64,000 bases of DNA, from assembly GCA_946965045.2 (NCBI GenBank), contig OX337234.1, forward strand, positions 186,001 to 250,000, read 5' to 3'. The position numbers and the translations under genes are program-made. The notes beneath the pieces are model-generated. The model saw nothing but the letters and a program-made list of their open reading frames with translations, was not told the DNA's origin and did no database searches. Positions within the stretch are counted from its first letter, which is position 1. Each line of letters opens with the position of its first letter. Below, piece by piece: positions 5,575-58,007 of this stretch. Source of the stretch: Epithemia pelagica. Its lineage: Eukaryota; Protista; Bacillariophyta.

Positions 5575-5579
5575 GGTCC

Positions 5580-6362
5580 TGTTAGAATTCTCACCGTCTA
5601 TGGTGGTTAGATTCTACATCTCATCGATTCCCCATGTCACATAGCCTCGTGCTATTGCATCATGCCCTCTAGCTTCGAGCTATGTTTCCTAGCTTCGCGC
5701 TATATCGACCTATATTTCTTCGCAAATCATGAAAAGTGAGAATAGATTGACGAACTCACTCTCAAGACTAAACTGGGTCGTGCGGTATTACAACGGACAT
5801 AAATTTGGCCGTTGCTCGGACATTATACTAACGCCCTAAGCGTACGCGCCCGAAATCATCGAGCGCGCCCAAGCGACATCCGAGCGCTATCGGCATCTAT
5901 CCGATCCAACGGTCTAAGTATCCCAAGCACGACACACGATCACGCGAGACCATATTTCCATTCCCACAATCTCCAAATTGTCAACAAGCTGCGCGCCATG
6001 AAAACAACTATGCCAACCCAAAGCAAGAGCTGTTGACCCTGTATATGTTATCCGCCCACATATACATGTCATATACATCACATGAATCAACTCCAACTAT
6101 TCCAAACCTGTTGCCGCCAAGAACCTATGACACATGACCCTTGGCAGGACCGAACATTTCACGTAGACCTATCGTAGTAATCAACACACAATCTAACAAT
6201 ATCACCATTTATCACATCCTCTTTTGTGTCCCGACTATCCTTCTGATAGACTTCGACTTGCTTGCTTCTCTGACCCTGAGAAGCTTGTATCGGTTGGTGA
6301 CCTACCTGATTGTCTGCTCTACCGAGCATCAATGTCCCTACGATTCAGAAAGAATTGTAACA
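5580..6362 (+). repeat. 5' LTR (783 bp)
   Basis: Direct repeat of 13181-13963 (offset 7601); only one mismatch seen by eye (5592 C vs 13193 T). Confidence 0.97.
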
Positions 6363-7178: not shown

Positions 7179-7498
7179 TTACTCATAGTTAACTCCCGTC
7201 CTCTCAAAACCTTTCCAAGACTTAAACTCAACGCACATCCGGGTACCCTTGGTCGCACAACACGCCACACATTCCCGTCAAATCGCGAAAATTCGGCGAA
7301 AATTTGTTGAAACTCGGCGAAAATTTGTCGAAATCAACGGAAATTTCCAGGAGTCGCACATCACAACACACATCCGGGTATCACATACGTGGTACATACG
7401 TGGCACACGTGGTACATCCGGGTTCACATCACATCACACATTAAATAAACCACATCACACCGCACATTAAATAAACATCGAACCAACCAAATAACACC

Positions 7499-10400: not shown

Positions 10401-13186
10401 TGACCAACGCTCTCATGAATGCCACTGGTTGCCCTGCCAACACCTGGCTTCTTTGCCTTGAGTATGTCTGTGACTTATTGAACCATACGTCATCACCCAC
10501 CCACTCCGGTCGCACTCCTCTTGAGGCTCTCTCCGGTCGCCCACCCGACATTACTCATCTCTTGTTCTTTCCTTTCTGGGATGAGGTTTACTACCGTGTC
10601 GACCCCGCTGAACCCAATTCCGGTTCATATCCATCTTCTTCTGATGAGAAACTTGGCCACTGGGTTGGTTTTGCTCACAACGTTGGTGATTCTTTTACTT
10701 GGAAAATTCTCACCCAGGATAACCAGATAATCTATCGTTCTGCCGTTCGCCGTGTTGAATCCACTACACCTAACCTACGTGTGGATCGACCTTCAGGGGA
10801 GGATTCGTCTGAGAAGGATGACAATGATAAGCAAGCTGACACTGTCTTCATTCGCAGTGATAGTGAAGACCCATCCAAACCAATGCCCACGATCGATTTT
10901 GACGACATGATAGGACGCACATTCCTATGCGACACAGAAGAAAATGGGGAGCGACACCGTGCACGTGTCATCAAACGAGTCATTGATCTTAATGAAGAAG
11001 CAACGAAACAGGAAGAACGTGTCAAGTACATTTACCGAAAGACAAATTCTGATGTTGATGAGATGATATCCTATAATCAACTCATGGAGTATATCGAACG
11101 AGATAACCAAGCTCAAACCTCTGGAGATAATCTTTTCAGGTTCAGGGATGTCATTGCCCATCAAGGCCCACTGAACACAACTGATCCAGATTACAAGGGG
11201 AGCAAATATAATTTGCTTGTTGATTGGGAAACTGGGGAGACTACCTATGAACCTTTATCACTCATCGCCAATGATGATCCGATCACTGTAGCAATTTATG
11301 GAAAGAAACATGGTTTACTCAACGAACCTGGATGGAAGCATTTGAAACGTTATGTCAAAACAAGCAAACGTCTCATTCGAGCAGCCAAACAGTCAAGGAT
11401 TAAACAAGTTCACCATTCCGTCAAGTATAAGTTTGGATTTCAAGTACCACGCAATTATGAGGAAGCTGTTGCTCTTGATAAACAACATGGCAACACAAAG
11501 TGGCAGGATGCAACAGAATTAGAATTGTCACAGATCCAGTCCTACAAGACATTCAAGGATTTTGGGAAAGCCATCTTCATTAAAGGGAAAGTATCCAATG
11601 CACCTGAAGGATATCATAAGATACGTGTGCATCTTGTCTTTGACGTAAAACATGATGGACGACATAAAGCAAGACTTGTCGCAGATGGACATCTCACAAA
11701 AGAACCTGTTGAGACAATCTATTCAGGTGTTGTTTCCATTCGCAACCTCCGCATTGCCTTATTCCTGGGTACTTTGAATGACTTGGAAATATGGGGAGCA
11801 GATATTGGAAATGCATATCTGGAAGCCTTGACAGGGGAGAAAATTTTCATTGTCGCAGGACCTGAATTCAAGGAATTAGAAGGTCACATCCTGATTATAT
11901 ACAAGGCACTTTATGGATTGAAGTCATCAGGCGCACGCTGGCATGATGTCTTATTCGATGTTTTGACAGACATGGGATTTTCACCAAGCAAAGCAGATCC
12001 GGATATCTGGATGAGGAAAGCACCTGGAGAAGACTGTTACGAATACATTGCCGTATACGTTGATGACTTAGCCATTATTTCTACTGATCCTGGGAATATC
12101 TGCAAGATCCTGAAGGAGAAATACAACTTCAAACTCAAAGGAGATGGACCTATTGATTTCCATTTGGGATGTTGTTACACCAAGGATTCTGATGGAACAT
12201 TCGTAGCAGATCCAAGACGCTACATTGGTAAGATGATGGACACTTTCGAACGAATCTTCAAGGAGAAACCCAAGAAAGCCAAAACACCTCTTATTGGTGG
12301 AGACCATCCTGAATTGGATGATTCTGAGCTCCTTGATGAAGAAGGTACTAGCCATTTCCAAACTCTGATTGGACAACTCCAATGGGTGATCACTATTGGT
12401 CGTTTCGACGTCTTCACCGCTACAATGACGCTATCACGCTTTCGTGCTGCTCCGAGGAAAGGACATCTTGATAGAGCCAAGCGTATCTATGGATACCTTG
12501 CACATCTCCCAGAAGGCGCAATCAGATTTAGGATTGGAGAGCCTGATTATTCAAGTCTTCCTACCCAAGAATTTGATTGGACTCGCACTGTCTATTCGAA
12601 TGCAAGTGAACGTATTCCTGAAGACTGCCCAACACCTCTTGGCCGCTATGTTACCACAACTCATTATGTTGATGCCAATCTCATGCATGACATAGTCACT
12701 GGTAAATCCGTCACTGCTGTTCTACATTTGTTGAACGGAACACCTATTGACTGGTACAGCAAGAGACAGAGCACGGTGGAAACTGCTACCTATGGATCCG
12801 AGTTTGTGGCTGCAAGGACAGCAATAGATCAGATTACAGAATTACGACATTCTCTCCGCTACCTTGGAGTACCTATCCGAGAGCGAAGTTACTTGTACGG
12901 AGATAACAGATCTGTTGTGCTCAATGCAACCGTTCCTCACTCCATACTATCCAAGAGACACCATCTTCTGTCATACCACCGAGTTCGTGAAGCCATCGCA
13001 GCAAAGTATGTTGCATTCTACTGGAAAGATGGAAAGACCAACCCTGCCGATATCCTTAGCAAACATTGGGATTTCGTATCTATTTGGCCCATGCTCAAGC
13101 CATTGTTGTTTTGGAAAGGAGAAGTTCAAGATCTCAACAAATCCAATGATGACAAGGCTGAAACGACGAGTTGTGGGGAGTGTTAG
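7499..13186 (+). CDS. Copia gag-pol polyprotein (1895 aa)
   Basis: Protease LIDRGANGG; integrase TDSVF/ISDGG/AENRY; RT LYGLKSSG and YVDDL; RNase H YVDANL..YGSEFVA..NPADILSK. Stop codon lies inside the 3' LTR. Confidence 0.97.
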   Translation: MDPQSPKTPTTPKGEDNQDNVSDTDLFDHIIFTVCQFFTKERADYLMKWMKYHGFENITHVISYMQTNTEESMKELTQYKVNKQTHDLQGPTRQQIKLLAYWATYKTNEIQDELSNSDWMNLTRKEFNTWRINTDFSKGPPSQVPVSPMKSPSSVKSVSTVTAASQSQQDLTAFRKGTKRDATAYEVFKDERYYDSFWRVFKTTAKAQGLSNVLNFKYTPPHDDEYAEELFQEQQVFLYSVLVRIIQTDQGRAYVREHEHDEDARAVLQKLHSLHTESDLAKREVLRLTNYISNLRLDDTWRGTTRQFLLHFQEQLRLLDNLVTLSDRIPDHTRMTFLMQAVEKVPDLRRVKILDNVVNTKSGAKSLCYQSYFRLLLDAAYDHDQATQSSVHSRRRHVKQHESLYGQDTDADITSQDDMEYHVHNTKATSESPSSSSKVSLPRDLWFKLSEEDRKLIIEYNKMIQAPSSTTPRTVQTHALDIDPEPDPDPNQVASDDDSPGVVPEHSDDSDPVTQFINQAMTTDINHPATDLTSVLSNAKSKTSKKVTFKANMHKQAGHVPRYLFSRKSTLPGNQLIDRGANGGLAGSDMRILSKTGRHITIVGIDNHELTGLPVVTCAAKFETNDGPIVGIFNEYAYYGKGLSIHAPGQFEHFGLAVDERSVKVDGKQRITTLDGRAIPLHIKDGLAYIHSLGIPSDDDMDTLPQIIFTSPDTWDPGVLDHSYSPTPSDNDPDWKHVKTDGSMSNHPYDNYGEYTDRVVCNLNLLLDLPYDHGPDDAPFFSIYADAEGNDPTLHASVHRRYQEAYDWKKFRPFFGWQSEDVIADTFKHTTRNGSITFDHDTLKKHFKARNPVLNIPRRHEPVATDSVFSDTPAVDHGGKVAQIFVGRDTLVTDIYGIKSTKQFVNTLQDNIRFRGAMETLISDGGSSLISQKVKDILRTLLIGEYRSEPYHQHQNKAENRYQTVKRMTNALMNATGCPANTWLLCLEYVCDLLNHTSSPTHSGRTPLEALSGRPPDITHLLFFPFWDEVYYRVDPAEPNSGSYPSSSDEKLGHWVGFAHNVGDSFTWKILTQDNQIIYRSAVRRVESTTPNLRVDRPSGEDSSEKDDNDKQADTVFIRSDSEDPSKPMPTIDFDDMIGRTFLCDTEENGERHRARVIKRVIDLNEEATKQEERVKYIYRKTNSDVDEMISYNQLMEYIERDNQAQTSGDNLFRFRDVIAHQGPLNTTDPDYKGSKYNLLVDWETGETTYEPLSLIANDDPITVAIYGKKHGLLNEPGWKHLKRYVKTSKRLIRAAKQSRIKQVHHSVKYKFGFQVPRNYEEAVALDKQHGNTKWQDATELELSQIQSYKTFKDFGKAIFIKGKVSNAPEGYHKIRVHLVFDVKHDGRHKARLVADGHLTKEPVETIYSGVVSIRNLRIALFLGTLNDLEIWGADIGNAYLEALTGEKIFIVAGPEFKELEGHILIIYKALYGLKSSGARWHDVLFDVLTDMGFSPSKADPDIWMRKAPGEDCYEYIAVYVDDLAIISTDPGNICKILKEKYNFKLKGDGPIDFHLGCCYTKDSDGTFVADPRRYIGKMMDTFERIFKEKPKKAKTPLIGGDHPELDDSELLDEEGTSHFQTLIGQLQWVITIGRFDVFTATMTLSRFRAAPRKGHLDRAKRIYGYLAHLPEGAIRFRIGEPDYSSLPTQEFDWTRTVYSNASERIPEDCPTPLGRYVTTTHYVDANLMHDIVTGKSVTAVLHLLNGTPIDWYSKRQSTVETATYGSEFVAARTAIDQITELRHSLRYLGVPIRERSYLYGDNRSVVLNATVPHSILSKRHHLLSYHRVREAIAAKYVAFYWKDGKTNPADILSKHWDFVSIWPMLKPLLFWKGEVQDLNKSNDDKAETTSCGEC

Positions 13187-17665: not shown

Positions 17666-18838
17666 AACACCAAGGCTCAGCAAGATAATGGTTCTGGTGG
17701 CCACTGTGACCCTTCGAGAATACCAAAGGGCACTTGCCCATGTTGGGAGGGACATGCGTACCAGCTCTCTGGACGTCTATCCAGCATGGACTTTGGATCA
17801 AGACACGCAAGAACGCGATTACAAGCCACCAAATACGTTTCCATCCAAGTCATGACCGAATTCGACCGGTTGCCCAAGAAATAAGAATGGTGGACAAATG
17901 GATACGCACAATTGTTGCCCACTTATGTATATCCCCATTCTTCTTTGTTTGTCAAGCTTTGTATACCACCAAACTGGAGTCGGAGAAACAGCATCCACAA
18001 GTCGAACCTGTCGCGCAAAAAACGAAGGTCACCAAGATAGTGGCCATCAAGAGGGGCGACTACTCCAAAACGCACGTACCCCAGACTCCCTTCTTATGGA
18101 TCCTACACCAACGAGTTGCATGTCATTTCTATGGGCGTGAAAGCAGGCCTTGTTCCTCATCACTGGGAATATGGCCTACCTGCAGACAACCTATATCCTA
18201 CTAACAGAGAATTGTTAATGTGTACTAGGAGTATCTGTTTGGTTCCACGCAGACATTCTTTACTCGTTGCGATTCGGTACGGAGGAACGTCTCCGGGACA
18301 ATCCGTAATCCGTAGCTCTCATGTTCCCAGCTGTACCTAGGTAGGTAGGAGTAGGCAATTGAAATTACAAGTAACTAGACGAGCAAGAGGATGTGCCAAT
18401 ATTGTGTTGGTAGGTAGACAAGGTAGGTTTCGGAGGATCCGAGTCCCGTTGAGGTACGCCCGCCGGCATTTCTCCGAATTCTTGGCAACACGAACGCCGT
18501 TTGCAATTATTTGCAATTTGCAAGTCTTCTCCCGTTCAAATTTTGACAGACACGGAGTACGGCGTCGCTGTGTCTACGAGGAGTTGTTCTCGAACGACAA
18601 TTATCCGACGCCCGTCGATCGTGTCACCAATATTTGAAGCGAGACGAAATTTTGTAGTCCGCGCGCCATGCCATCAAACCCAAAAAATGGTTCGGTCACA
18701 ATTTCCAAAAAACGACACACCGAGAACACGAGAACTCAAAGTGTCTCTCCCAATTTTTCGATTGAACCGCAAGCAAAAGTATCCTACTGTGTAACGACTG
18801 CATCCACATCCTCCTTTTTGGTTCCATACAACACTACC

Positions 18839-20513
18839 ATGTGGACTCGTTCGGTTGGCGCTCTTGTTTCTGTGTTGGCCTGCACCAGTTCGGCTACTAC
18901 TACTACTTTGGAATCGACTGGTCCGACGCTGGACTTTACGACCTTGCCCGGTTCCGAAGGGTTGTGTTCGCCTCGCAAATTGTCGGCTCTCCACAATGTC
19001 TTGTACGTGGCCAATTCGGGCATTGGTGGCGTCACGGCCGACGATCGACAGTATTGTGCCTTGGAACGAGGCTTTTTGTCCTGCATGGGACCCACCTCGT
19101 CCGTCTCCGCCTTTTCCCTTGCAACGACTGGAGCAGAACGACGCGAGGTGGTGACGAACCTGTTTAGTTCCCGCATTGTCGAGGGGGTCTTGTTTGAAAC
19201 CCAATCCACGGGCGCGCACCATGCCGTTCCCGATGCCACGCGGTACGATCAAAAGGGACAACCCATTCTCTATGTTGTGGTGGGATTGGGCATGAATGCG
19301 ACGGAATTGCGTCGAGATGGCATTGAACAAGCCGTCGGTGCCTTTGGAGCCATTGTCGAGGCCAATTTGTACCAGCAAACGGCTCTGCCCTGGGTCTATC
19401 CCTGGGAAGATGAATATGCCAATGATTATGACAACAGTGGGGACGATACCGATTCGGGCATTTTGCCCGTCCCCAATTCGAATCCCTACCATTTGTTGAT
19501 TCGCAAGAACAAGTTTTATGTGGTACGTTTTCCCCCGACAAAAATAGAGAACTCAGAATGAATGGTGTTGTTGTGGTTTGGAGAGATCTCATTGTTCAGT
19601 GTTTGTTGTTGTTATGGTTCCTACATGTATGTCGGTCTGTTTCTTGCTGTTGTTATTGATGTTGGTGTTCCGGTAGATTGATGCGGGTGCCAATGCCGTC
19701 TTGATTTATCAACGAAAACCGAATGGTTGGTCTGAAACGGGCGAGGATCCCGTCGTCTTGGTCTTGCCCAAATTGTCCAGTCCGACCAATCCCGAATACG
19801 AAGTGGAATTTGTCCCCACCGCCCTGGCAACCCGGCCCGGTCATGACAATCAACTCTATATTTCCGCCTTGGCGGGGGCACCGTGGACGGAACCCGTGGC
19901 ACAACTCTTTCAAGTCGATTTGGACCATGACGGCTATCCCAAACCCGACACTTTGCGCGTCGTGCCCGGTGGTCCCTATTATGCCATTGCCGATTTTTCC
20001 TTTGCCGACGAATCGACCATTTACATTTTGGAAACCAATCCCGGCGTGCCCTTTATTCCCTTTGCCGGTCGCTTGTCGCAAGTCACCTTATATGACGACG
20101 ACGACGACAATGAAATGGCCACGAGCGTGACGGTCGAAACGACGCTGCCCTTGGTGGCACCCTCGGGCATTGTCGTCTACAACCATGCCATTTACATTAC
20201 CAACCGTACCTTTACGCCGTCCGGATTTGATGGCACCTGTACCGGTCACATTGTTGTGGCTGCCCTCCCCAAGAAGGGTCCCGAAAAAAAGAGTGGCAAA
20301 AAGGAAAAGAGTGGCGACGATAAGGGTGGCAAAAAGGAAACGAAGAAAATGAGCGACAAGAAGAAGAAGATGAGTGACTACGACGACAAGAGTGGCAAAA
20401 AAGAAAAGGGCGGCAAAGAAAAGGATACAAGTGGCAAAATGAAACACAAGAGTGACGGTGGCAAAACGGAAGCCAAGAGTGACAAGAAGAATGGATCCAA
20501 GGGGTATTATTAG
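18839..20513 (+). CDS. Secreted ScyD/ScyE-family-like beta-propeller protein with Lys/Gly-rich C-terminal tail; intron 19523-19676
   Basis: Signal-like MWTRSVGALVSVLAC; SPRKL..LYVANSGIGG, SNPYHL, FYV|IDAGANAV (joined by splicing), VPTALA..LYISALAG, LVAPSGI..IYITN; tail KKSGKKEKSG...SKGYY. Confidence 0.75.
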
Positions 20514-45000: not shown

Positions 45001-45783
45001 TCAGCTATTAAAGTAGACTTACGACCCGATACCATTCGCAAGAAAAAGTCATCCTTATCTTGACTGTCGCACAGTCCGACGGATTTGCATTATGGCGGGG
45101 GTGCTTGTTCGTGGTTGGGTATTACCTTGCATTCCTGGGTGGTTCATTATTTGCATTGGTCTTTCCGGTCCAGTTTTGCTGCCGTTTTTTGAGTGCCGCC
45201 GTCGGATTCTTGGTCTCGACCTTGCTCTTTGCCGCAGTCTTGAACGGATTGGGACATCATCATCCCAAGTGTTTGGGTGGCGTGGATTACTTTACCGATG
45301 CCTTTGTGTTGATGCCTTTGTTTCGAGTTGGACCACCTTTAGTACGGTACGTGCACACACACGCACAAGACACTAGGGACATTTGCCAAGAGGTGGTTGT
45401 CATGTTTGTGTTGTATCCATGATTCCATGTGTTTTCTCATACTGTCGTTGTGCACACATGTGTGCTGCTGTGGGATTGGTGGTATCTGTACAATACCAGG
45501 TGGGATATGGGTTGATTTACAGTGGTATTAGTCCCGATGAACACGATATTCGCAAATGTACAGGCATGACCTTTGCCGTGACCTTGTAGGCCTTTGTCTT
45601 TCCAAGGTCACACGAACCCAATCCGTGGCCCAAGTAGCCTTCTTTAGTACACCCATTGTCATTCGATATGGATCCATGTTCGAGGTGTTGCTTGTTTGCA
45701 AGGTTTGTTCCTCATCTTGCGTAAATGAGACAATGGCTTATAAACAAAAGCTATGCACTGCAACTCAAAAGTTATCCAAATAA

Positions 45784-46100
45784 TAACCGACTAGCATAAA
45801 CAGTCAATCGTAACTGTTTAAAACACACGTGACGCATTCTGATGCAAAATCCTTAGTCAGTCAGCCAAATTTTCTTATTCGATAAGAAAATCACCTAGTC
45901 AGTTATAAGTCTATTAGAAAAAATAAGTCGATCATTGAGAAATCCCCGACCGACTTAATAAGTCAGTCAAATCAATATTTATTCCGTTACATTTTATTTT
46001 TACTCAGTCACCTTCATTATAGACTGTCTTATATCTTTAATTGACCCATATGACCGACTTAATTTTCCTAATCAGTTCACCATATCAATAAGTCAGTTAA
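45784..46100. repeat. Left subterminal repeat array (AGTCRGTYA / TAACYGACT)
   Basis: Copies at about 45784, 45855, 45897, 45947, 45961, 46052 and 46091, in both orientations. Confidence 0.8.
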
Positions 46101-46301
46101 TTTTTGTTTGAGGGGAGAGAGATGAGAGAGACGGAAAAAGCCGCGACGAAAGATGAGTGAGACGACGACGCGATCAACGAGAGAGAGAATGTTGATCTAT
46201 TTACAAAATAATATGGAGTTTCTGAAATACTATAATGCAACTAATATATATATGAAGATATTTTACCTCTCCTCATGCCTTGGCCATTATAGATACAAGG
46301 A

Positions 46302-49025
46302 TCAGGAATTTCTTCGTGATGATGAACGTGACGACCTCATGGATCGTTGCCCGACCTGTCCTGTTTCTTCCTTCAGTTTTTGCTTCATCTTCTCGATGTA
46401 GCACGCATTGCAAAATGCATGCTTGCAAGAATGACTTGCAAGCAATGCATGTTTGCATGCCATTATTGGGTTCTTCTGGTTGATCTTCTTTTTCCCACCG
46501 AATCTCTCCTTGCACTCGATACATACTGATGGCCACTTTGTATTTCTGGCATAATATTTCTCGTTAAAATATGTTGTCGTGTCCTCTTTGATCAAATGAC
46601 ACAGACCATGGTCAAATTCTTCGGAACACATATTGCTACCTTCACTAGATCCTTTACGCCTTGGCGATTTCCTCCCCCCTTGTTTCGCGTTGGTTGCCTG
46701 CAAGAAAGGAAATCAGACAAGAACATGTTAGACTTTCATGACCACTACAACGGATTCTTGAGTCGTCTGAAACATTACAATATTATCCGTACCTTTCTTT
46801 TTCTTTTGGGAGGGCTTGTTGTCTAAATATAGGATCATTCATTCATGCACAAGTTAGTTTCGAAAGTATATAATTGCAGTGACAACCACCATCCCAACTC
46901 ACGTACCTTCGCGACTGTTTCCTTTTCAGCACCATCCCTCGACGGATGATGTACGCTACTACTCGACATGTCCTGCTGATTACTAGAACCATTCTTCGTG
47001 ACTGTCTCTTTCGCACTTGTGGTTTGTCCCTGTTGATCGTCACACGTCTTTTCACATAGATCGACATTTGTGCTCTCCTCCAATTGAGTTACTAATTCAT
47101 CATTTTGGGACGTGTTCTCCCTTGGTCCATCTTCTGTAGTTGGTGGTTGACAATTGTTGTTTGATTCCACTGTGGTTCCTTCACTGACTTCTTCCTCAAC
47201 ATTTGGAGTAGGTTTGTCCTTTTTTCCACCGTTCGTGGTTCTTACACTGACTTCTTCCTCAACATTTGGAGTAGGTTTGTCCTTTTTTCCACCGTTCGCG
47301 GTGGTATTTTCAGTACCAGTTTGCTTTTGTTCACTAGACCCATCCCTTTCCGTGTTCTCTCCTGAATCCCACAATGTGTTACTCTTTCCCACGTTGCCAG
47401 ATTCCTCAAAAAGTGGTGGCGACAAATCTCCTGTTGATTCGGAATGAACTGACTGATGATCTTCATTTTCTTCACAGTGCTGCTCATTGTCTACGTATCC
47501 AGCCACACCCAAAGGAATTGGTATGTTTGTAAGTTGCTCATTGGCATCATTTGTTGATTGTCCTCTACTCGTATTGATAATCACGTTTCCTGGCTCAGTG
47601 TTGTTGTTACGATTTGTTTCGTAGCCAACGCGATTTACAGTCTCTAACTGTTGTCGCCTCTCATTCTCTGAATTGGTTTGGTTACCAACGCAAACAGTTG
47701 CATTGTGCGCTCTGCTTAACGTTCCTTGCAGATTGTCCGTCAAATCTGAGATCTCAGCAGGGTTTGTATGCACAACGAGTTCTCGTCCGGTGATGTTTCC
47801 GTTCCTTGGTATTGCCTGTCTTGGCACAAAACACGTTGCCCAAAGCATTCTGACACACTCTTCGTCAATATTTACACCGATTGCTTGTGAAAATATATGA
47901 CTTGCACGCTCGAAGTCAGGAGTTGTACTGTCTACCTCAATGACGTTTGGATTCGGATTCTGTTCCTTGAGATTTCTCAAACAGTTGTCCAAATCAGGTT
48001 AGTACTATAGGAGCATCTTTGTTAGACAACACCAAACGTAGGACCGCTTGAACACGTACCTGTTCCGTTGACACAACCACATAGAAAAATGTGGACTGAT
48101 TGTACCGAACCTTCTTTTCATAGCTATGATTTTTGCCCTGACCTTTTGTTAAGGAAATACTCCAACCTGCATTGCACAGCATCGGAGACATCAAGCTACC
48201 CACCACGGCGGACTTCGCGGAACGAGCTACGGCTGAAAACCCTCCTCTGTCAGTCGGACAGGTTCGTGTTCTCTTCCCATTCACAAATTTTGGTTTTTGT
48301 TGGGGGAGAAGTACCATTCCTTCATTGTCAAACCACTGATCAATTGCCGCTGCAAGCCAGTGTCTGTCCTTATGAAATTGATGGACTAACTCGAAGACCA
48401 TTCTTTCATTGTCCGGTGTGCTTGTCAACTCGTTGAGAATTTTTCGGAAATCTTGTATCGTGTGAGGAAAGGAAGCTTTCCCTGGCATTCGAACATCCAT
48501 CTCCTTGGCTCTGGTACGGATACTGTCTTCATATGTTTTTTTGATGTGGGCCCGAAGACTATCTCGAATCTCTTGAATCTCTTGTAGCATCAGTTTACCG
48601 TCCGGTAGAGTGTCTGTGTCCGCCAAACCATCCGTCCGTCGGGCCTTCCGATACATCCATAAGCGACAAGCTTGTTCCTCAGTTGTTGGGCCGGCACCAT
48701 TTGTTGGATTAAAAAAATTACGAGGATATTCCAGTAAGACTCTTGGTTCCTCACGATTTAATTCTGTTGTTGGATCATTGTTCCGATGAATCGGTATGGA
48801 CCGTGTATCATTGTCCAATACCGTTTGATTCAGTTGCATTGTTGTGTTATCTCGTCTATTTTCATTCCTGGAATTTATACTTCCGATGGATGCTCTTGTA
48901 GCTTCGTTGAGGTTCTGTGATTGGGATGCGATGGATGTCAGGTCATTTGAGTTCCGTGATTGAGCGGTGCTCACCCCGATCGGCGGAACGCGCATGGGCA
49001 AATTCCGATCAATGGTTCGAAACAT
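46302..49025 (-). CDS. Three-exon accessory gene of the CACTG element (~804 aa) with C-terminal Cys/His zinc finger
   Basis: Exons 49025-48060, ~47959-46907 and 46697-46302; both donors GTACGT in phase 0, TACTAAC branch at 48004-47998; tail CIEC..CKH..CKHAFCNAC; 63-bp internal duplication at 47182/47245. Confidence 0.6.
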
Positions 49026-49635
49026 GGACTAAAAACGATCGAAATAAGCCAACAAGCAATGATTAGCCGGAAAAGGATTATCAAACACAGCTAACTGTGA
49101 CGTTACATACCATCTTTCAATCGTAGACCTCTCTGTCTCTCCGTCTATATTGAATAGCAAAAGGTGCTCTCTCCTCTCTGTTGATGAGACGCAACATATA
49201 CACCCGCCACACACAGAGCATCACATACACCCACACGACACGCACGATTTTTGTTGAGGACGAAAATCTCCACTTGTATTGTGTAGGTTAGACGTTACAC
49301 AGGCACAGCAAACGGTTGTTCTGGTGGTGTACGGTACTCATTTTCTTATGTATTTCATCTTTACGACGTCTTGGTTAGGTCTGCTCCTCTAAACATTTTT
49401 GTAAATTATTGTTGATTAGACATTATTTTGAAATTTTATCTAAGTGACTTTCAAACGCGGGACGCCAAAGCAATACCGCTCTATAACAAATTAGAGAAAG
49501 GAAATGTCTCACTGTGACTAATTTTGGGGGATTCATCCCCCATTTCCACTGTCTCTCCTCATCGTCCTTTTTTCTCTCTTGGTTATCTGAAATACAAATG
49601 GAGGTAATGAGAGAATGGACACCTCGTGCATATAG

Positions 49636-52600
49636 TTGATGCAAATAGACGATCCCTGTAAACTTATTGACAACGATATCCTTATGGATTCCCTAAGTAC
49701 ACCCACGACCTTGGAGATTCAGTGTCCGGAATGCTATATGTCCGTGGTTTGCATTCCGGCGAAAGCTTCCCCACCAGAAATGGAAAAATTCTTGTATGAA
49801 GGAACATGTTCTAATTCCATTAGTAACTGTTCCATGGCGTCAAAAACCTTCTTCTGTTGTAAATTATGCATTGGTGATTCAGGACATTGTGGGAAATCTA
49901 CAGGATACATCAGACAATGGAAATATGTTCGACGGCATTACTCTACTTCGTTTCACCAGACAAGACTTTCTTCGACAAGATGCAGTGCCTTGAAAGACTA
50001 CGTACAAGAGGAACAGGATCACTTTGTTCCAGACGTGGATTCAGGAGACTCGGTCTTTATAGAAGAAACAACGGTGGCAGTTCCGGAAGTTATTCCTTCA
50101 CTTCAAGAACTTCGTGGTCTTGGTTTTGATAAAGATTCAATGACTCCTCGATTCATGATTGAAGAATTACGGTGCAAGGGACAGGGAATACGCTGGCTAA
50201 CTGCAAACGCGTTTGGACTCCAATCATCGCAGGTTAGTGATGAGGAAGCTCGTTTCTGTCTCCGTCTTTCGTCACTTTTAGTGCAATTATCAGAGCATCA
50301 GAAGAAACAACTTGGCGAGATCTTGACGATTGCTGGTAATAATGGTCATCCACAACTGTCCATTTTCCAAAACATTCGATTGCCTACAACATCCGAAGAC
50401 TTCGACCGATTCTTCTTGACTGGGAAGAATGCTATTCTCCCAAATCTGCCCCACCCAGTTCCGAAAAATACGCCAGATGGGACACATTCGTTTGTTTCGT
50501 TGACTGATTTGTTGGCGAACGAATTTGGGAAGGCAACGGAATTTGATCAATTCGAATTCTACACCACAATCCAATTGGGACCTCATGATAGAGTCCCAAG
50601 TGTATCTTCAACAATGTGTGCAAACTCGCTATACATAACACTGAAGGAATGCCATAAAGAGACTGATGAAGCACAGCACGAAGCACAAGGCGAATCCTTT
50701 GTTATCTATCTATGGCTTCGTGAGTGGCGCGATGACTTTGACCCCAATAATACAAAGTCATCGCGCAATCAAGTTTGGTGTAACACTTTCACTTTGAGCC
50801 CGCCACAGCAATCAACTAACATTCGTGGAGCAACGACGTACTATATGGGCTTGTCAAGTAAAGGAGACGATCACCGACAGATCGAAGAGATAATGGCGAA
50901 TGAATTGGATCTGTTATCATCCGTTGGTATGCAGGTTTATCATGGGGGCTTGCGGAAAGTTATCCGAATCAAGGTTGGGAAACTCTTGATTTCCATCGAT
51001 CGGCCAGAAAGAACCTCCATGTTCAACATTGGAGACCACAATGGCACCTATTCAACGTGCTGGGGATTTGCATCGAGTGTGGATGGGAACTGTATGGTCA
51101 ATCATTTACCTGCATGCACAAAATGTAAGAAAGAACGCTCAGATCGCCTATTGAATGACTCAACAACATCCACAACCGCTTCTTCTACATGCAATTCGTG
51201 TTCCAATTGGAATCTTGAAGACCCAAAGTTCGTATTTCTGGCTCCCCCGGAATATCCACAGAGGTATGATCAATCTACCGACGCACCACAGCCTCCTATA
51301 TTACGGAATCTTTGGTATCGGATCGAAGATATACAGACAGCGACCACTAACGAAGGAGAAGAGACCAATCAAGAAGAAAATGGTGAAGGCACATCAAAGA
51401 AGAGGAAAAAACAGAGACGGAAGAAACCAACAAAGCGGATATATTTGCGTACCGTGCGACTTAGCGTTACTTGGCTGAAAGAGGCCGTAACCTTCGCGTG
51501 CCACAACGTACGACAACCTTTCGAGATACAACGACCGAGTAAAAAGTTCTGGACAAAGAGTAATTTTGTGGCTTTCTTGAAGACTTGTGCACTAACAAAT
51601 CGCATGATTGAATCTCTTTACCAAGAATGCTCTTCTCGTGTCATAGACCCAACGTTGCCAGTGTGTTGGAATGATGCCACCTCCTTGGCCAAGTGTCATT
51701 TCGCTCCAATGCACATGCTTTTCTTGGGGCATGTGAAAAGCAACATCGAGATGATGTCCAAATGGCTTGGAAAATACAACAAATTGGCTACATTCGGCAA
51801 ACAAGCCAACAAGTACTTGAATGGAATTCGATCATTGCGGGCTACCAAGTTCTTTTGTGCGCAACCATTGTCAACATCCTCATGGGGCACTGGTGTGTGG
51901 GTTTCGGAAAACTACCTACTGGGGGCGCGTCTTTGGAGATTCATCATAGCCATACCGAGTATCTGCAATGACAGGCTATTCCATTCTCCAACATATAAAG
52001 AAGAATGGAATACCGTAAGTAAATTCATGACGTCGATGACCATGTGTCTTGGTCGAATCATGACGAATCAAAAGACAATCCCAGACATGGAAGACTACAT
52101 TCATCTATACATGGACTACATGGTTGAGGTCGATAGGATTTTGGCCAGCGTAGACCGGCAAAAGAAGAATCCTAATTTTGTTAAGTCCAATTCACTTGGG
52201 ATTTTGTCCTGTGCAAAGGCACATGAAGAGATGGGCCCGGCATTATTGCACTGGGAAGGAGGATGGGAAGGCGAGCGCAAGATTCAACAAGTCAAACCAA
52301 TGCTGACAATCAAACGCAGTACGGCAAATTGGACAATGATTACGATGCGCAAGTTATACCAATATGATACTTTGGAATGGATGCTTGACAAAATGGACGA
52401 ACAAAATGGGTCTAGATCAAGACGGAAGAGAGATAGTGACGCAGTGCTGAAAGTTTTCAAGAACCGTCAGGAAATGGAACAAGACTTGGCATCGAATGCC
52501 ATTCTATGTGGTCTATTAGGCAATGACAAGCATATATATCTTGCCTATCGTCCGACAGGAGAGGAAGAGGGAAATACTCGGCGGTTGGTGAAAATATGCC

Positions 52601-52872
52601 GTGTGATGGTAGACGACACATCGGGAGAATGGACTCCAAGTCGATGTTGGACGGCACCACTCCATCTTGGTACCGAAACAAAGCTTTATGACTCGATTGG
52701 ATGTCTTTGGGAAGATTTTATTGAGGAAGTGCTGATATGTATGCCCAGAATCTCCGAAACGAATGGAAGTTTCACGAATTTGTATTATATCGTCGGAAAT
52801 TTATGGAGAGAACGACAACCTAATGGACTGCATACAATACCGGATATACGGGCTATCACATCTAATGAATAA
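49636..52872 (+). CDS. DDE transposase of the CACTA/Plavaka (CMC) type, 1078 aa
   Basis: WRDDFDP (cf. CACTA TDGFNP), IDRPER, PMHMLFLGHVK, WVSENY, WEGGWEGERKIQQVK (cf. W..FER); N-terminal Cys/His finger; located inside CACTG TIRs. Confidence 0.8.
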   Translation: MMQIDDPCKLIDNDILMDSLSTPTTLEIQCPECYMSVVCIPAKASPPEMEKFLYEGTCSNSISNCSMASKTFFCCKLCIGDSGHCGKSTGYIRQWKYVRRHYSTSFHQTRLSSTRCSALKDYVQEEQDHFVPDVDSGDSVFIEETTVAVPEVIPSLQELRGLGFDKDSMTPRFMIEELRCKGQGIRWLTANAFGLQSSQVSDEEARFCLRLSSLLVQLSEHQKKQLGEILTIAGNNGHPQLSIFQNIRLPTTSEDFDRFFLTGKNAILPNLPHPVPKNTPDGTHSFVSLTDLLANEFGKATEFDQFEFYTTIQLGPHDRVPSVSSTMCANSLYITLKECHKETDEAQHEAQGESFVIYLWLREWRDDFDPNNTKSSRNQVWCNTFTLSPPQQSTNIRGATTYYMGLSSKGDDHRQIEEIMANELDLLSSVGMQVYHGGLRKVIRIKVGKLLISIDRPERTSMFNIGDHNGTYSTCWGFASSVDGNCMVNHLPACTKCKKERSDRLLNDSTTSTTASSTCNSCSNWNLEDPKFVFLAPPEYPQRYDQSTDAPQPPILRNLWYRIEDIQTATTNEGEETNQEENGEGTSKKRKKQRRKKPTKRIYLRTVRLSVTWLKEAVTFACHNVRQPFEIQRPSKKFWTKSNFVAFLKTCALTNRMIESLYQECSSRVIDPTLPVCWNDATSLAKCHFAPMHMLFLGHVKSNIEMMSKWLGKYNKLATFGKQANKYLNGIRSLRATKFFCAQPLSTSSWGTGVWVSENYLLGARLWRFIIAIPSICNDRLFHSPTYKEEWNTVSKFMTSMTMCLGRIMTNQKTIPDMEDYIHLYMDYMVEVDRILASVDRQKKNPNFVKSNSLGILSCAKAHEEMGPALLHWEGGWEGERKIQQVKPMLTIKRSTANWTMITMRKLYQYDTLEWMLDKMDEQNGSRSRRKRDSDAVLKVFKNRQEMEQDLASNAILCGLLGNDKHIYLAYRPTGEEEGNTRRLVKICRVMVDDTSGEWTPSRCWTAPLHLGTETKLYDSIGCLWEDFIEEVLICMPRISETNGSFTNLYYIVGNLWRERQPNGLHTIPDIRAITSNE

Positions 52873-52898
52873 TACATGCTATTAACTATCTATGTACC

Positions 52899-54344
52899 CT
52901 AGTCAGATGAGCTATGAATAGATGAAATTATCCAGGGATAAGCGACTCGAGTGGAAACCATAGTCCAAACATGAAGACGACGGTTTGTTTTGAGGTCCTT
53001 TTTAATGTACCCCGCCTTCTCGATCGCCCTGAGGATTGTTGTGGTATATCGCAAAGATGAATTTTCGTGTTGATGACAACACTTAGTGACTCTTTCGTGA
53101 ATATCAGATGAAGTGATCCAACCATCTTCCTTGTGGTGGTCAACAAAATAACATAGCATGTAATAAATACAAAGCAGATTGGAATCGAGAATGGAATGTG
53201 AAGGGATAAAACAAACTTGATTCGTCCATTTCATGACACAACGTAGAGTCTGGTGGTTCACGGAGCATCGAGACCATCCAGGTTCGGGCACGGATTTGAA
53301 ATTGTCCACAGGCGTGTTGTTCAATAAGGGAAGCAACCTATTCTTCGTTCCAGTCCGAGTTCCCATGCAACGACGTGGGATAAATATAATGAGTCCGGCA
53401 CCCCACGTTTGTCCTTCTGTAAGGGAAGGAAATTTCGAAATGCATTTTGATCTCCGAATGGGAATTGTGTCCAGAAGTTCTTGCACTTTCTGAAAGTAAG
53501 GTAACGGAGTGGAGCAGCTCAACCCAGTTGTGACACCACGGGCGTCCATACTCTGTTTGGTTTCTTCAAGTTCGATGTCGAACTGACGCCCAACAAGAAC
53601 AATTCCGCATTTGCACCATTTGCCAAGAGTGACATATGCTACTCGATCAATGAAATTCTTCGGACTGGTCATTGTTAAAAGCATGTGATTTGTTCGTGCG
53701 CCTGTGAGAATTTCGTCGACGATAATATAGAAACCATGGTGCGTCGACAATTGACCAAGTCTCTCCAAGAACCGAATGCTTAGAGTACTTCCATTAGAAG
53801 CAAGAAGTAACTCTAAGAAGAGAACTTTCACCGGTTGTCCCAAGGTATGTTGGTACATACATCGTTTGTGGATATGGTTTAAGCACAAGTCTTCATATGA
53901 GTCTTGTCCTCTTGTTCCCATAATTCCTTGGATACAATATGGTAAGGCGATTGTACGTGCTCGTGCCGAAGAAGAAATATCATCACACGTGGGTGCGTAG
54001 ATGTAAGAAGGCCCATCGTTCACTCTGAAGTCAGCCGTAGACCAAGATTGTAGCGGCCCCAAATCTCCCGATATATAACTTCCACATCCGACCAGAACAC
54101 AATTGGTATCTCCCTTACTCAAACTCGTGATGGCAAATAAATTTGCATCGGAGCCATTGGGTGTCAACTTTTCCAAAGAGAATTGTCCTTTTGTTGTGTC
54201 CTTGATAATGGATCGTAATTCGATCTCGGACTGTTTGTCGTCGGATAGATAACAGTCGGTAAGCGTACGTTTGTTGGAACGTCGTCGTGAGTGTTCGATT
54301 AGAACATACGAAGAACCCCAGTTATTTGCGAAATCATCCGACAT
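52899..54344 (-). CDS. Class-III PLP-dependent aminotransferase-fold protein with putative C-terminal winged-helix (481 aa)
   Basis: NGSDANLFA (cf. SGSEANE.A), GSYISG (cf. SYHG), FLELLLASNG, FLERLGQLSTHHGFYIIVDEILTGART, VTLGKW (PLP Lys); C-terminus ITSSDIHE..TTILRAIEKAGYIKKDLKTNRRLHVW. Confidence 0.75.
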   Translation of the reverse strand: MSDDFANNWGSSYVLIEHSRRRSNKRTLTDCYLSDDKQSEIELRSIIKDTTKGQFSLEKLTPNGSDANLFAITSLSKGDTNCVLVGCGSYISGDLGPLQSWSTADFRVNDGPSYIYAPTCDDISSSARARTIALPYCIQGIMGTRGQDSYEDLCLNHIHKRCMYQHTLGQPVKVLFLELLLASNGSTLSIRFLERLGQLSTHHGFYIIVDEILTGARTNHMLLTMTSPKNFIDRVAYVTLGKWCKCGIVLVGRQFDIELEETKQSMDARGVTTGLSCSTPLPYFQKVQELLDTIPIRRSKCISKFPSLTEGQTWGAGLIIFIPRRCMGTRTGTKNRLLPLLNNTPVDNFKSVPEPGWSRCSVNHQTLRCVMKWTNQVCFIPSHSILDSNLLCIYYMLCYFVDHHKEDGWITSSDIHERVTKCCHQHENSSLRYTTTILRAIEKAGYIKKDLKTNRRLHVWTMVSTRVAYPWIISSIHSSSD

Positions 54345-55028
54345 CGCTTATTCTCTATTATCTCTCGTCTTTGTGTCGCCTCTCGCACCGTCTCTCTCGT
54401 TGTTGTTTTCCGCCCTCACACACACACACTCTCTCTCTCTCTCGTCGTGTGGGGGGTAGAATTTGGCGGGTCGCAGAGAAAATGTGAGAGGAAAAATGAT
54501 GCATGTATACGACTGCCGGCATGCGTGTCGGACTTTGGCAAGACCAAATGACGATGAGTCAATACCGATATAGATTTAAATTATTATATTGGATATTGAT
54601 ATTGAATCAATTTTTATGTTTAATAAGGAATATGATATGAGCAAATTTCATAGAGCATCTGTTCGGCTCTACAAGGAAACAGTACAGATATGAGATTGTT
54701 CTATTCATATTACGTTTGTGAATAAAGGATATTGTATGGATGAAATAAATATCAATCGAATAGGAAATTGGATGTGTGAGATACATAGACCGATAAGAAT
54801 GAATGATATGTTGTTTTGAAATAATCGTTGTCTAAGTATCATGGATCGAAGTGAGCAAGCTTGTTTGATCATTTATAGATTACCAAGACCAAGACCATTT
54901 ATAATCCCAGATCCGTTATTGGAAATTCGAAATATAGCATTGGATTGATATGTGTATAAATGAGAGAGAGAGAAAGGTGCATGATCATAGAGAGACATCT
55001 CGAGAGAGACAACGGCATTCTCACCACC

Positions 55029-56060
55029 ATGTCGTCGTCGTCTTCGGAATCGTCGTCGTCTTCGGAATCGTCGTATGGAGACACTGTATGCGTCAATCAT
55101 GTACCTTACTTTGATTGGGTACTGATGGACAATATAAGGATTGGTTCGTTCATGGCCATCCAGATGAGAGACCAAGAAGATCCAACGGAAATATCCATCG
55201 TCCGGTTGGAAGAACGACAACAAGACGACGACGTGGATCCAGAGATAGCGTCAACAAATATCAGGTTGCGTCTTTTCCCACCCTTGTTTCCGAACAAGCG
55301 TGTGAGTTGGCATCCCAAAATGCCCAAACACGACCACGAAGAAATCGAAAATGGACATGGATCCAAGCATCAAGAACTGTATGAGTCAACAGAGAATCTC
55401 TGGATTGCTGGTGAGAAACCGGATGAAAAGATAAAGCTACTGTTCCCAACTTTCGTTTTCACTTTGGATGAATTATGCAAACCACAAAATGTATGGGCAG
55501 AAGGAATGTCGAACGTCTATTATGTTCGATTCTGGCACCATACCATCAATTCGTACACAAAAAAAACAAAGCACCGTCTCGAACCATTACCATCAACGGC
55601 CTGTATGGGTTTCCCAAATAACAACCCGGACTACAAGCATCCAAGTAATCTAATTATTCCGCGACGGTGCTTCCATTACAATGTTTGGTTTGGATTGTAC
55701 AATCTGCGCAAACAGCTTCTGAAAAAGATGGCAAAGGATGACATTTCAAGCAGTGACAAGAGAGATGAATTGACAATGAAGGTCGGGTGTATTCCCATGG
55801 AGTGTATTCAGTACATACACACGCTGGGAAACTCGGTTATATCGACTCGCAAACTAAGAATGTCTTACCAATCGGGTTTCCTCCGATTTGAAACAGTGGG
55901 AGACTTGATCTATCTCAATTCTCTGTTTGGGAAAAGAGACAAATGTCTCAAACGAGGACATCACCTCAGTGTTGGTAAGTCAGATAAGAAGAGTAAGACA
56001 AAGGATGCCGACAATTATGATACAAAGAAGACAAAAGGATTGATGTGGGAGATATCGTGA
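55029..56060 (+). CDS. Accessory ORF of the CACTG element, BAH-like N-terminal domain (tentative)
   Basis: IRIGSFMAI..IVRL..IRLRLF..ELYES..FVFT..GMSNVYYVRF resembles the BAH strand pattern; ORF is open from 54960. Confidence 0.45.
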   Translation: MSSSSSESSSSSESSYGDTVCVNHVPYFDWVLMDNIRIGSFMAIQMRDQEDPTEISIVRLEERQQDDDVDPEIASTNIRLRLFPPLFPNKRVSWHPKMPKHDHEEIENGHGSKHQELYESTENLWIAGEKPDEKIKLLFPTFVFTLDELCKPQNVWAEGMSNVYYVRFWHHTINSYTKKTKHRLEPLPSTACMGFPNNNPDYKHPSNLIIPRRCFHYNVWFGLYNLRKQLLKKMAKDDISSSDKRDELTMKVGCIPMECIQYIHTLGNSVISTRKLRMSYQSGFLRFETVGDLIYLNSLFGKRDKCLKRGHHLSVGKSDKKSKTKDADNYDTKKTKGLMWEIS

Positions 56061-56124
56061 CGTCTCTCCTATATAGAAAAAACGTCTCGATGAAAAATTC
56101 AGAAGAGAAATAAACAGTCAAAAA

Positions 56125-56340
56125 ATAACTGATTGAAAGTGATACGGTTACTTGTAACTGAGTAACTTTTTAGTCAGTTATGATCTTCGACTAAAGATTA
56201 AGTCGGTTAACTCGGAATCGTCTTATGATAAAACGATTGGTGTAACCGACTTTTGAAAGACGGATATGCATCAGTGGTCAGTCAGTTCGGTTTTAATCGT
56301 TTAATTATAAGTCAGTTAGAAAACCGGTTAGTCAGTTGGA
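56125..56340. repeat. Right subterminal repeat array (AGTCRGTTN / TAACCGACT)
   Basis: Copies at about 56172, 56201, 56243, 56280, 56310 and 56330. Confidence 0.8.
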
Positions 56341-58007
56341 GATTGATTTGCAGTGTGGTTTGTAAAAAATATCTAGGTAGGGGTAACTAGGGCAAAAGCT
56401 ACTCGTGGTATCTTTCGATTTTCGGGTCCGGTCGCACATGCGTATAATGAGTGCAATCGCAAAATCGCGTTTTGATAGAATGGCCTGCATGAAAGCGCGA
56501 TGCGATTTGGAAGGAATTTTGGTGAGCATGAGCACCAAAATCGCGCTTTCGCGCGTCGATAGAATGGGCCCCGCAGTGCATGCGATCACGCGTGACTCAC
56601 TCACATGCTTGGGGGTATGTGGCTCCTGAATACGACGGATACTGAACTCAGCCGTCCTATACCGCCTTGGCGGTTTCAATTGTACGGACACTGACGTGGT
56701 TTTGTCTCTTGGAACTCAGCGAGACAATGGCGCACACACACCGATCATCGGTATTAGCCCTCTCTGTTCGACCGAACCAGAAACCAGAAAAGATCTGGAG
56801 TTGGTGCTGGTGAATGCAAACGAGAAAATCTAGATAGGCCTCACAAGCAAAAAGTGTTTTCTTTACAAGTCTCTTGATTGGTCATTTATTTTCCCTACCA
56901 GGATGATGATGACTACACTGCTACTAGTTCTAATTTCGTGGACCCATAAGGTTATGGTCGCTGCCTTTGGTTTGACTGCGTGGTCCTTTTATCCTCGTGT
57001 GTGCGAATGAGGGCAACTTTTCATCCAGCATTGCTAAACTCTTGATCAAACGCATGCAGGGGTCGATGCTGGACCAGGTGATTTTGTTTCGTTGAACGAG
57101 ACAGAACGGGTCCTTTTGCAATAAAGTACTGCATCGGCCGATCAGCTAATATCACAGCAAAAACAAATGGACGGTACAATGTCATTCAAGAGTCATGCTT
57201 ATAAAGAGTTCGAACGGATGAACAACAAGAACAAAAAGAGTTGTCCTCTCGAACCAAGGACAGCGTGGGCGGTGGACCTCATTCTGGAGGTATTGGAGGT
57301 TGCGGTCCAGTAGTCTTTGATGACTGACTGGATTGTCTCTTTACGATGAGTCGTAAAAGTTCCGAGCAGCTCTTTCTGCGACGGGTGATCGCGTAGGCAT
57401 TGGTGGAAACGAGGCCCAGATGGAAGAATTATTTGACGGTGCTGAGGAGCTCACCATGGGTGTTTCGGAGGTGGTGGAGCTGTGGAGGTGTCGGGACCTG
57501 GAACGAACATGGGAAATGCTTAGTGCACTATGAAACAACGCATCAAGTAGGCATGCTCGGACGTCGTCCATCGAAATGCCCTCTATGACGAATCAAGCAA
57601 TCGTTATTCACTCATAAGGCAATGCGTCTATTCTGTCAGTTCAACGAGCACATGACACGTCTGCATGCGAATCAGCACCTCTTTTGATCCGTCGAGGTGT
57701 CCCCTCTCCACCATCCGATTCTTTTCCCTCTACACGTCGAGTCTCCCAACACAGCATGTATGTGATGGATTTGGATCGGTCGAATTGTGCTCCACGAAGA
57801 ACGAGCACGAATCAACAACAAACACACCAATGTCTACTTGATCACGGAACGAGAACGAAACAGTGAGTCGAAACGCATCCATAACCCATCTTGTTTGTTC
57901 GAACTAGACTTGACTGCATCCATCACAACGCTCCTGGCTGCCACAAAAAGAAAGCGCTCCTCGTAGAGGAAGGACCTTTTTCTGATCAATTCCACAAAGA
58001 AAAACCA

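Follow-up and report, generated by a model that had tools for sequence, protein, structure and literature searches.

This study revealed that a 10.6-kb DNA transposon of the diatom Epithemia pelagica encodes, next to its transposase, a protein of 481 amino acids (aa) which joins the fold of class-III aminotransferases, enzymes dependent on pyridoxal 5'-phosphate (PLP), to a predicted C-terminal winged helix. The element lies in a stretch of 64,000 nucleotides (nt), hereafter the window, taken from contig OX337234.1 of assembly GCA_946965045.2 (positions 186,001 to 250,000, forward strand), and all coordinates given without a contig or locus name refer to this window. From the sequence comparisons described below, we consider it probable that the 481-aa protein is a core protein of a family of CMCT-type DDE cut-and-paste transposons, with CACTG ends and 2-bp target-site duplications, and that it performs a PLP-dependent step which the element needs. 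By fold and by profile, the protein can be placed in the class-III aminotransferase superfamily (PF00202, fold-type I) as a divergent branch, and not as a Pfam-level member. Our literature search found no description of a transposon-encoded PLP aminotransferase.

Fold, active site and predicted winged helix of the 481-aa protein

The gene is a single open reading frame (ORF) with an ATG start and no internal stops. On other contigs, homologues were called independently with an equal length and a matching N-terminus, and the gene is thus intact and intronless, as had been proposed in an earlier reading made from the sequence alone (the sequence-only reading). The gene and its parts are as follows.

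52899-54344, reverse strand: 481-aa protein with PLP aminotransferase fold and predicted winged helix (ORF, homologues, AlphaFold2 model, Foldseek, VIA)
53274-54344, reverse strand: class-III aminotransferase-fold domain, aa 1-357 (VIA Z 27.1 to 2jjh, hhalign to E. coli GabT)
53715-53717, reverse strand: codon of D210
53619-53621, reverse strand: codon of K242
52950-53189, reverse strand: predicted winged-helix domain, aa 386-465, with a basic wing that includes K452 and R456 (domain model, Foldseek, VIA, wing charge)

Taken alone, the 481-aa sequence gives a weak signal: the Pfam model Aminotran_3 is reached with an E-value of 0.27 and 10.3 bits, which misses the gathering cut-off of 30.5, and GabT in the Protein Data Bank (PDB) with an E-value of 0.57. 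The family to which it belongs is much more informative. A word-index search returned 53 related proteins, the window's own included, and a profile search of 1.84 billion protein representatives recovered 644 representatives at E<=1e-3 and 274 at E<=1e-30, none of which bears a name. The profile of the family reached taurine and gamma-aminobutyrate (GABA) aminotransferases in the PDB at an E-value of 5e-6. Among 31 aligned family members, 23 matched Aminotran_3 at E<0.01, the best of them at 3.4e-9, and hhalign aligned the family profile to E. coli GabT with a probability of 91.8% and an E-value of 7e-7.

The alignment of these 31 members was used as input to AlphaFold2, which produced a model of the 481-aa protein with a mean local confidence (pLDDT) of 87.5 and a predicted template modelling score (pTM) of 0.90. 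The top Foldseek matches of the full model are all class-III aminotransferases (E ~1e-9). In VIA comparisons, aa 1-357 were superimposed on the lysine aminotransferase of M. tuberculosis (2jjh) with a Z of 27.1 and a root-mean-square deviation (rmsd) of 3.5 A over 324 aligned residues, and the 50 entries listed, each with a Z >24, are all class-III-fold PLP enzymes. The fold is thus common to GabT, M. tuberculosis Rv3290c, the omega-transaminases and BioA (Z 25-27), and the architecture of fold-type I, consisting of a large alpha/beta PLP domain and a small domain, is present in aa 1-357 according to both VIA and Foldseek. The ESM Atlas, searched by features and by structure, returned canonical aminotransferases only. 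Since the family profile and the fold both support it despite the weak single-sequence signal, the assignment to the PLP fold is firm. Membership in the daptide aminotransferases was rejected: the corresponding NCBIfam model (NF041821) is matched by most family members (27/31), locally (aa 169-229) and at ~21 bits against a cut-off of 450, which makes it a lead only.

With regard to the active site, the protein contains the motifs VDEILTG (aa 209-215) and TLGK (aa 239-242). Although it is only ~13-16% identical to class-III aminotransferases, and differs from them in its added winged helix and in being encoded by a transposon, it has equivalents of their Schiff-base lysine, pyridine-nitrogen aspartate, phosphate-binding glycine and serine, stacking tyrosine and carboxylate-binding arginine.

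G64-S65: GabT G111-S112, PLP phosphate (hhalign)
Y90: GabT Y138, ring stacking (hhalign)
E178: GabT E206 (hhalign)
D210: GabT D239, pyridine nitrogen (hhalign)
K242: GabT K268, Schiff base (hhalign)
R336: GabT R398, carboxylate arginine (equated by motif, NRLLPLL against LRILVPL)

Conservation was counted in 114 representatives, one per cluster of 50% identity. K242, D210, E211, E178 and R217 are present in all of them, R336 in 113 and Y90 in 112. Such near-absolute conservation of the active site in so divergent a family argues for a cofactor site that is in use. The loop following K242 is shorter than that of GabT by ~5 residues, and the first ~40 residues of the canonical enzymes are absent, their place being taken by an invariant N-terminal DDxANxWG motif which is the family's own. 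D94 was considered as a clue to a basic substrate and dropped, an aspartate being found at this position in just 56 of the 114 representatives. A nuclear localization signal in the basic patch of aa 19-26 was likewise rejected; the patch lies in a low-confidence loop, a comparable one occurs in only 32 of 112 representatives, and it is at most a weak hint for the window's clade.

The C-terminal part of the protein was assessed separately. In the full AlphaFold2 model, aa 386-465 form a helix, a short strand, two further helices and a beta-hairpin. A second alignment was used to model aa 358-481 alone (pLDDT 79.7), and the secondary structure of this domain model (helices 29-45, 55-66 and 74-86, strands 90-95 and 100-105) follows the topology H1-(S1)-H2-H3-S2-wing-S3. 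The top Foldseek matches of the domain model are all winged helices (MarR/ZitR, PerR/Fur, PadR, TubR, FOXM1 and TFIIE), with weak E-values from 3e-3. An exhaustive VIA comparison gave Z values of 9-10 with 62-89 aligned residues, 60-85 of them at an rmsd of 1.4-2.7 A, and its winged-helix matches include an RNA polymerase III subunit, Fur, Z-alpha, the cullin WHB domain and MarR. By its modelled fold, the segment of aa ~386-465 is a winged helix, and it is retained across the whole family. The hairpin wing is basic family-wide, with a mean net charge of +4.6 and with R456 in 107 of the 114 representatives; this is compatible with nucleic-acid binding, no proof of which it provides. In the longer family members (640-670 aa) no firm added domain was found, one weak Tudor match aside.

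These results bear on several points of the sequence-only reading. Its class-III signatures held, since both motifs are present and hhalign places D210 and K242 on GabT D239 and K268, and the separate structure searches which it had proposed for the two parts of the protein led to class-III aminotransferases and to winged helices, respectively. Its winged helix-turn-helix in the C-terminal ~60 aa was right as to the fold and too short as to the extent, which is ~80 aa.

The carrier element and the linkage of its two genes

The element spans 45756-56355 and encloses the 481-aa gene together with a gene for a 1078-aa protein. Its left end at 45756 and its right end, read as the reverse complement from 56355, both start with CACTGCAA, and each is flanked by TG. 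Apart from the 481-aa gene, the following features were found.

45754-45755, no strand: left copy of the target-site duplication, TG (sequence read; the empty-site contigs of runs X1-X3 have a single TG)
45756-45769, forward strand: left terminal inverted repeat (TIR), starting with CACTGCAACTCAA and identical to the right end in 12-13 of its first 14-20 bases
45756-46205, no strand: left subterminal region with four AGTCAGT repeats (45855, 45897, 45961, 46091)
46302-49025, reverse strand: three conserved ORFs (343, 385 and 133 aa) which may form one spliced accessory gene; the 133-aa ORF is Cys-rich and RING-like
49636-52872, forward strand: transposase, 1078 aa (family alignment, CMCT motif pattern)
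54960-56060, forward strand: 366-aa ORF, divergent from the 481-aa gene and without known domain (homologue in L001 only)
55906-56355, no strand: right subterminal region with four AGTCAGT repeats (56172, 56280, 56310, 56330)
56342-56355, reverse strand: right TIR, reading CACTGCAAATCAAT inward
56356-56357, no strand: right copy of the target-site duplication, TG

The window contains 15 copies of AGTCAGT, of which eight are found no more than 450 bp from the termini; each end has four of these eight, and all eight are in the plus orientation. The 481-aa gene and the transposase gene are convergent, tail to tail, with their stop codons 26 nt apart, and both the position of the ORF within the TIRs and this orientation agree with the sequence-only reading.

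Public contigs of the same organism (runs X1-X3) were mapped on the right junction. Contigs with loose ends at 56356 carry the left flank (...GGCTTATAAACAAAAGCTA) directly before TG and the right flank, and one contig of run X3 presents the empty site as AAACAAAAGCTA-TG-GTTTGTAAAAA. An empty site with a single TG in the same samples proves the boundaries of the element as well as its 2-bp duplication. The existence of this allele also means that the insertion is polymorphic or heterozygous, and hence young. Contigs of the filled allele are identical to the window over 52500-56369.

In the alignment of the transposase family, an ordered series of motifs was recognized: W363-x-D365-D-F-D-P, D454-x-P-E, C493xxC496, C518xxC521, H687xxxxH692 and W754-x-x-E757. 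The motif residues are invariant with the exception of C496 and H687, each conserved at >=90%; D365, D454, C493, C496, H687, H692 and E757 are presumably catalytic in the 1078-aa protein. The pattern D..D..C(2)C..H(3-4)H..E characterizes the CMCT clade, comprising EnSpm/CACTA, Mirage, Chapaev, Transib, Plavaka and ESTA as well as Lanisha, whose members have CA..TG termini and duplications of 2-5 bp, with 2 bp in PlavakaA/B (PMC12730594). The element described here combines CACTG..CAGTG termini and a 2-bp duplication with the ordered motif pattern of the transposase. CACTG termini, subterminal repeats and the transposase pattern are common to it and to EnSpm/CACTA, Mirage and Plavaka, whereas its 481-aa accessory is not TnpA-like.

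Classic EnSpm/CACTA elements have a target duplication of 3 bp. The window element and two complete relatives all have 2 bp (TG in the window, TA in L002 and TT in L003), and for this reason assignment to classic EnSpm/CACTA was rejected. Features derived from a language model point from the transposase to clusters of Plavaka and Transposase_21. No Pfam model, including Transposase_21 and Plavaka PF18759, matched the 1078-aa transposase or any of 32 family members, and a profile search with the family alignment returned only the family itself, with no bridge to named lineages. The defensible label is "CACTA-like, CMCT clade", which names no lineage within CMCT. The name "CACTA element" used in the sequence-only reading is only approximate: it agrees with the CACTG termini and the motif pattern, and disagrees with the length of the duplication and with the negative Pfam result.

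The linkage of the two genes was followed across relatives in ten informative loci, namely the window, L001, L002, L003, L004/L005, L008, L009, L011, L014 and L015; L016, a 2-kb contig, was too short and was left out. A transposase homologue adjoins the 481-aa-type gene in all ten, down to a transposase identity of 22%. Identities to the window proteins are given for the following loci.

L001: aminotransferase-like protein 68%, transposase 62%
L003: aminotransferase-like protein 46%, transposase 41%
L002: aminotransferase-like protein 40%, transposase 39%
L004/L005: aminotransferase-like protein 31%, transposase 22.5% (the most distant locus, together with L011)

When pairwise identities were compared over the ten loci, those of the one protein were found to be strongly correlated with those of the other (Mantel r 0.96; 0 of 5000 permutations equalled it), and conservation is slightly higher in the aminotransferase-like protein than in the transposase, as the nearest pair illustrates (68% against 62%). 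In the window's clade, the genes are arranged tail to tail with 12-120 nt between them, whereas in the most divergent clade (L004 660-6394, L011 3-4456) both are on one strand, with the transposase upstream of the aminotransferase-like gene. Two of the relatives are complete elements, in which CACTGCA ends enclose both genes.

L002, 5997-15608: TIR matching at 19/20, duplication TA
L003, 8276-17427: TIR matching at 16/20, duplication TT

Near-identical cluster members found elsewhere number 273 for the aminotransferase-like protein and 204 for the transposase, which would mean a high copy number there. Adjacency at ten of ten loci and co-divergence lead to the conclusion that the 481-aa gene is a long-standing core component of the element and not a recent capture. 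This bears out the sequence-only reading, which had suggested that the gene may be dedicated to the transposon and had proposed co-occurrence with the same transposase between CACTG TIRs as a check.

Further features of the element and its relatives

With regard to the intergenic regions, the 26 nt between the convergent stops (52873-52898; 12-120 nt in relatives) make an overlap of the 3' transcripts probable, and this could give rise to antisense RNA. The 615 nt between the divergent 481-aa gene and 366-aa ORF (54345-54959) contain a (CT)n/(GA)n tract at 54409-54456 and are probably a shared promoter region.

In the left arm, homologues of the 343-aa and 133-aa ORFs were found in L001, L002 and L003, and of the 385-aa ORF in L001 only. 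A Pfam search of these ORFs gave weak zinc-finger matches only, and no match to the 343-aa ORF was obtained from the ESM Atlas. At 46835-49025 on the reverse strand, the 343-aa ORF and the 385-aa ORF adjoin each other in different frames (stop at 47994, next start at 47992), and their homologues at L001 15357-17544 overlap by 50 nt, again in different frames. This arrangement suggests that a conserved intron or a frameshift joins them, possibly with the 133-aa ORF (46302-46703), into one gene. At L002 5997-15608, the aminotransferase-like gene has the homologues of the 343-aa and the 133-aa ORF on its opposite side compared with the window; the gene order has been rearranged there while the convergent pair of aminotransferase-like and transposase genes stayed together.

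The closest related element, in L001, lies between two Kelch-repeat genes (4575-5735 and 18699-20015). Its right end, which reads CACTGCAAGTC, is at 18711, a few bases into the second Kelch gene as called, and the element may have inserted in a tandem Kelch array. A left terminus was sought in L001 and not found, and this copy may be truncated. L004 contains a 1924-aa ORF without Pfam match (6875-12649, reverse strand).

Tudor domains recur in the relatives. A domain similar to that of PTM/DIR17 is encoded by a separate gene in L009 (971-2470, reverse strand; 38.5 bits, over the Pfam cut-off) and is carried by one transposase homologue (P0117), and the aminotransferase-like homologue P0146 has a weak C-terminal Tudor match at aa 579-619. 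This recurrent and loose link to a chromatin reader hints at chromatin as the arena in which the proteins act, and is a lead only.

Public sequence data provided three further observations. A 217-nt contig of a biofilm metagenome (run X4) matches the 481-aa gene at 53899-54115 with 3 differences, which indicates that a close relative of the element or of the organism is present in that biofilm. In run X3, contigs are interrupted at 53448/53477, 54170/54222 and 54559/54606, with a depth in the middle piece (53448-54170) that is twice that of its neighbours; there may be a second near-identical partial copy of the 481-aa gene in this sample. At 56341-56674, contig depth jumps from ~70-120 within the element to 800-21000 immediately beyond its end, where many variant contigs occur, and the element thus adjoins or sits within a very high-copy repeat. 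Among the public sequencing runs, no RNA run was found to contain the locus.

Candidate roles of the protein and their precedents

In the role that we favour, the 481-aa protein would bind PLP and would dimerise, as is usual for fold-type I. Its winged helix would recruit it to DNA, for which the AGTCAGT subterminal repeats are candidates, to chromatin or to the transposase. There, PLP chemistry or PLP-dependent binding of a ligand would be needed for the movement of the element or for its sustained expression.

Several observations weigh against this role. The single sequence scores far under the Pfam threshold of Aminotran_3. Two contacts of GabT to the substrate or the cofactor are altered: the position of Q242, the glutamine that contacts O3' in GabT, is occupied by leucine or methionine in the family, and GabT R141 corresponds to D94, at a position which is variable across the wider family. 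The best VIA matches of the winged helix include winged helices of cullin, ESCRT-II and RNA polymerase III subunits, which are engaged in protein contacts. Winged helices frequently mediate such contacts, as well as DNA binding. The element has other conserved ORFs and its transposase has a Cys/His-rich N-terminus of its own, so the end-binding factor may be another protein. Finally, the correlation of identities would also be expected if the two genes were co-inherited for any other reason; it demonstrates co-inheritance and not function.

Whether the PLP domain acts as an enzyme is a distinct question, on which we lean towards real catalysis with some reserve. A working enzyme appears likelier than a pure sensor, because there is practically no variation at the catalytic lysine, at the aspartate or at the arginine that binds the carboxylate. 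Two precedents make an enzymatic role plausible by analogy. Genes for TET/JBP dioxygenases are carried by fungal EnSpm, Plavaka, Kyakuja, Dileera, Zisupton and other DNA transposons; they were acquired several times and occur in only some transposon families, and those of fungal CMCT and KDZ transposons are thought to counter silencing by methylation (PMC12730594). As in the element described here, an enzyme gene and a transposase gene lie within complete cut-and-paste elements, some of them CMCT. In contrast, the enzyme class and the chemistry are different and the 481-aa-type gene is found beside the transposase at every informative locus, which leaves a likeness in logic only. The second precedent is gp52 of phage M6, which is described as a PLP-dependent enzyme acting on a DNA-borne group in thymidine hypermodification (PMC11472151; PMC8989533). 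Together with the daptide aminotransferase, an enzyme of the ribosomally synthesized and post-translationally modified peptides, gp52 illustrates that PLP enzymes can act on groups attached to DNA or to peptides.

The alternative which survives best, and which we nevertheless regard as unlikely, is a sensor comparable to MocR/GabR, as the sequence-only reading had suggested with its possible coupling of transposition or chromatin to amino-acid or nitrogen status. Such a protein would bind a small amine or amino acid as an aldimine without turning it over. This would alter the binding of its dimer to the element ends or promoter, and transposition or transcription would follow the metabolic state of the cell. 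MocR proteins are bacterial and consist of an N-terminal winged helix-turn-helix of the GntR type and a class-I-like aminotransferase domain. MocR, GabR and PdxR likewise hold a winged helix and a PLP domain of fold-type I in a single chain and offer a possible model of ligand-dependent DNA binding; the dimers established for fold-type I would suit repeated sites, which the subterminal repeats provide at both ends of the element, and the replacement of the O3'-contacting glutamine by leucine or methionine may indicate altered chemistry. On the other hand, the domain order is the reverse of that of MocR/GabR and the PLP domain is of class III, as the sequence-only reading had recognized and as the model confirms. 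No sequence relation was found, and the GntR models of Pfam had no match at E up to 1 with the 481-aa protein or up to 0.01 with the 31 family members. Moreover, unlike bacterial MocR, the family occurs on large contigs, where its neighbours are genes of eukaryotic type (for copia-type reverse transcriptase and Kelch-repeat proteins). Membership in MocR/GabR is ruled out by the domain order and the aminotransferase class, any similarity would be convergent, and the carboxylate-binding R336 and the entire PLP cage are kept as in working enzymes.

A more specific form of the enzymatic role has, in our view, a rather small chance of being correct. The winged helix would tether the PLP enzyme to DNA or chromatin, where the enzyme would edit an amine or carbonyl borne by a macromolecule at or around the element; a 5-formylpyrimidine-type base, a histone lysine or a DNA-bound polyamine would be the putative substrates. 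If this were true, the protein would be a transposon-encoded enzyme of epigenetic or DNA editing, with a role similar to that of TET/JBP and a chemistry new to eukaryotic chromatin.

It is very improbable that the protein is a pseudoenzyme, in which the fold is no more than a platform on which a protein with a DNA-binding winged helix dimerises, with TnpA-like binding to the ends, and in which PLP is irrelevant. The strong divergence from canonical enzymes and the loss of the N-terminal segment would fit such a scaffold, but a scaffold has no need to keep K242, D210, E178, R217, R336 and Y90 in 112-114 of 114 clusters that are less than 50% identical to one another. Although DNA transposons are well known to capture host genes and the fold is that of ordinary metabolic enzymes, a captured metabolic aminotransferase that does the element no service and at most takes part in host metabolism is close to refuted by the adjacency to the transposase at every informative locus, by the co-divergence of two proteins of which the aminotransferase-like one is at least as conserved, by a separate clade of 644 representatives which barely touches the canonical class-III enzymes, by the added winged helix kept throughout the family and by the invariant N-terminus that replaces the canonical one.

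To our knowledge, the helpers of eukaryotic cut-and-paste transposons known so far comprise DNA-binding factors, proteases and helicases and, in fungal elements, TET/JBP dioxygenases. A helper that combines a PLP aminotransferase fold with a winged helix, and that hundreds of clusters have retained no less faithfully than the transposase, would add new chemistry to transposon biology. A sensor would tie the activity of the element to a metabolite, either an amine or an amino acid, and an enzyme would have some nuclear substrate. As an intact copy whose insertion is young and polymorphic, the element lends itself well to an assay of reconstituted transposition, and an active element of this kind could be tried as an algal genetic tool.

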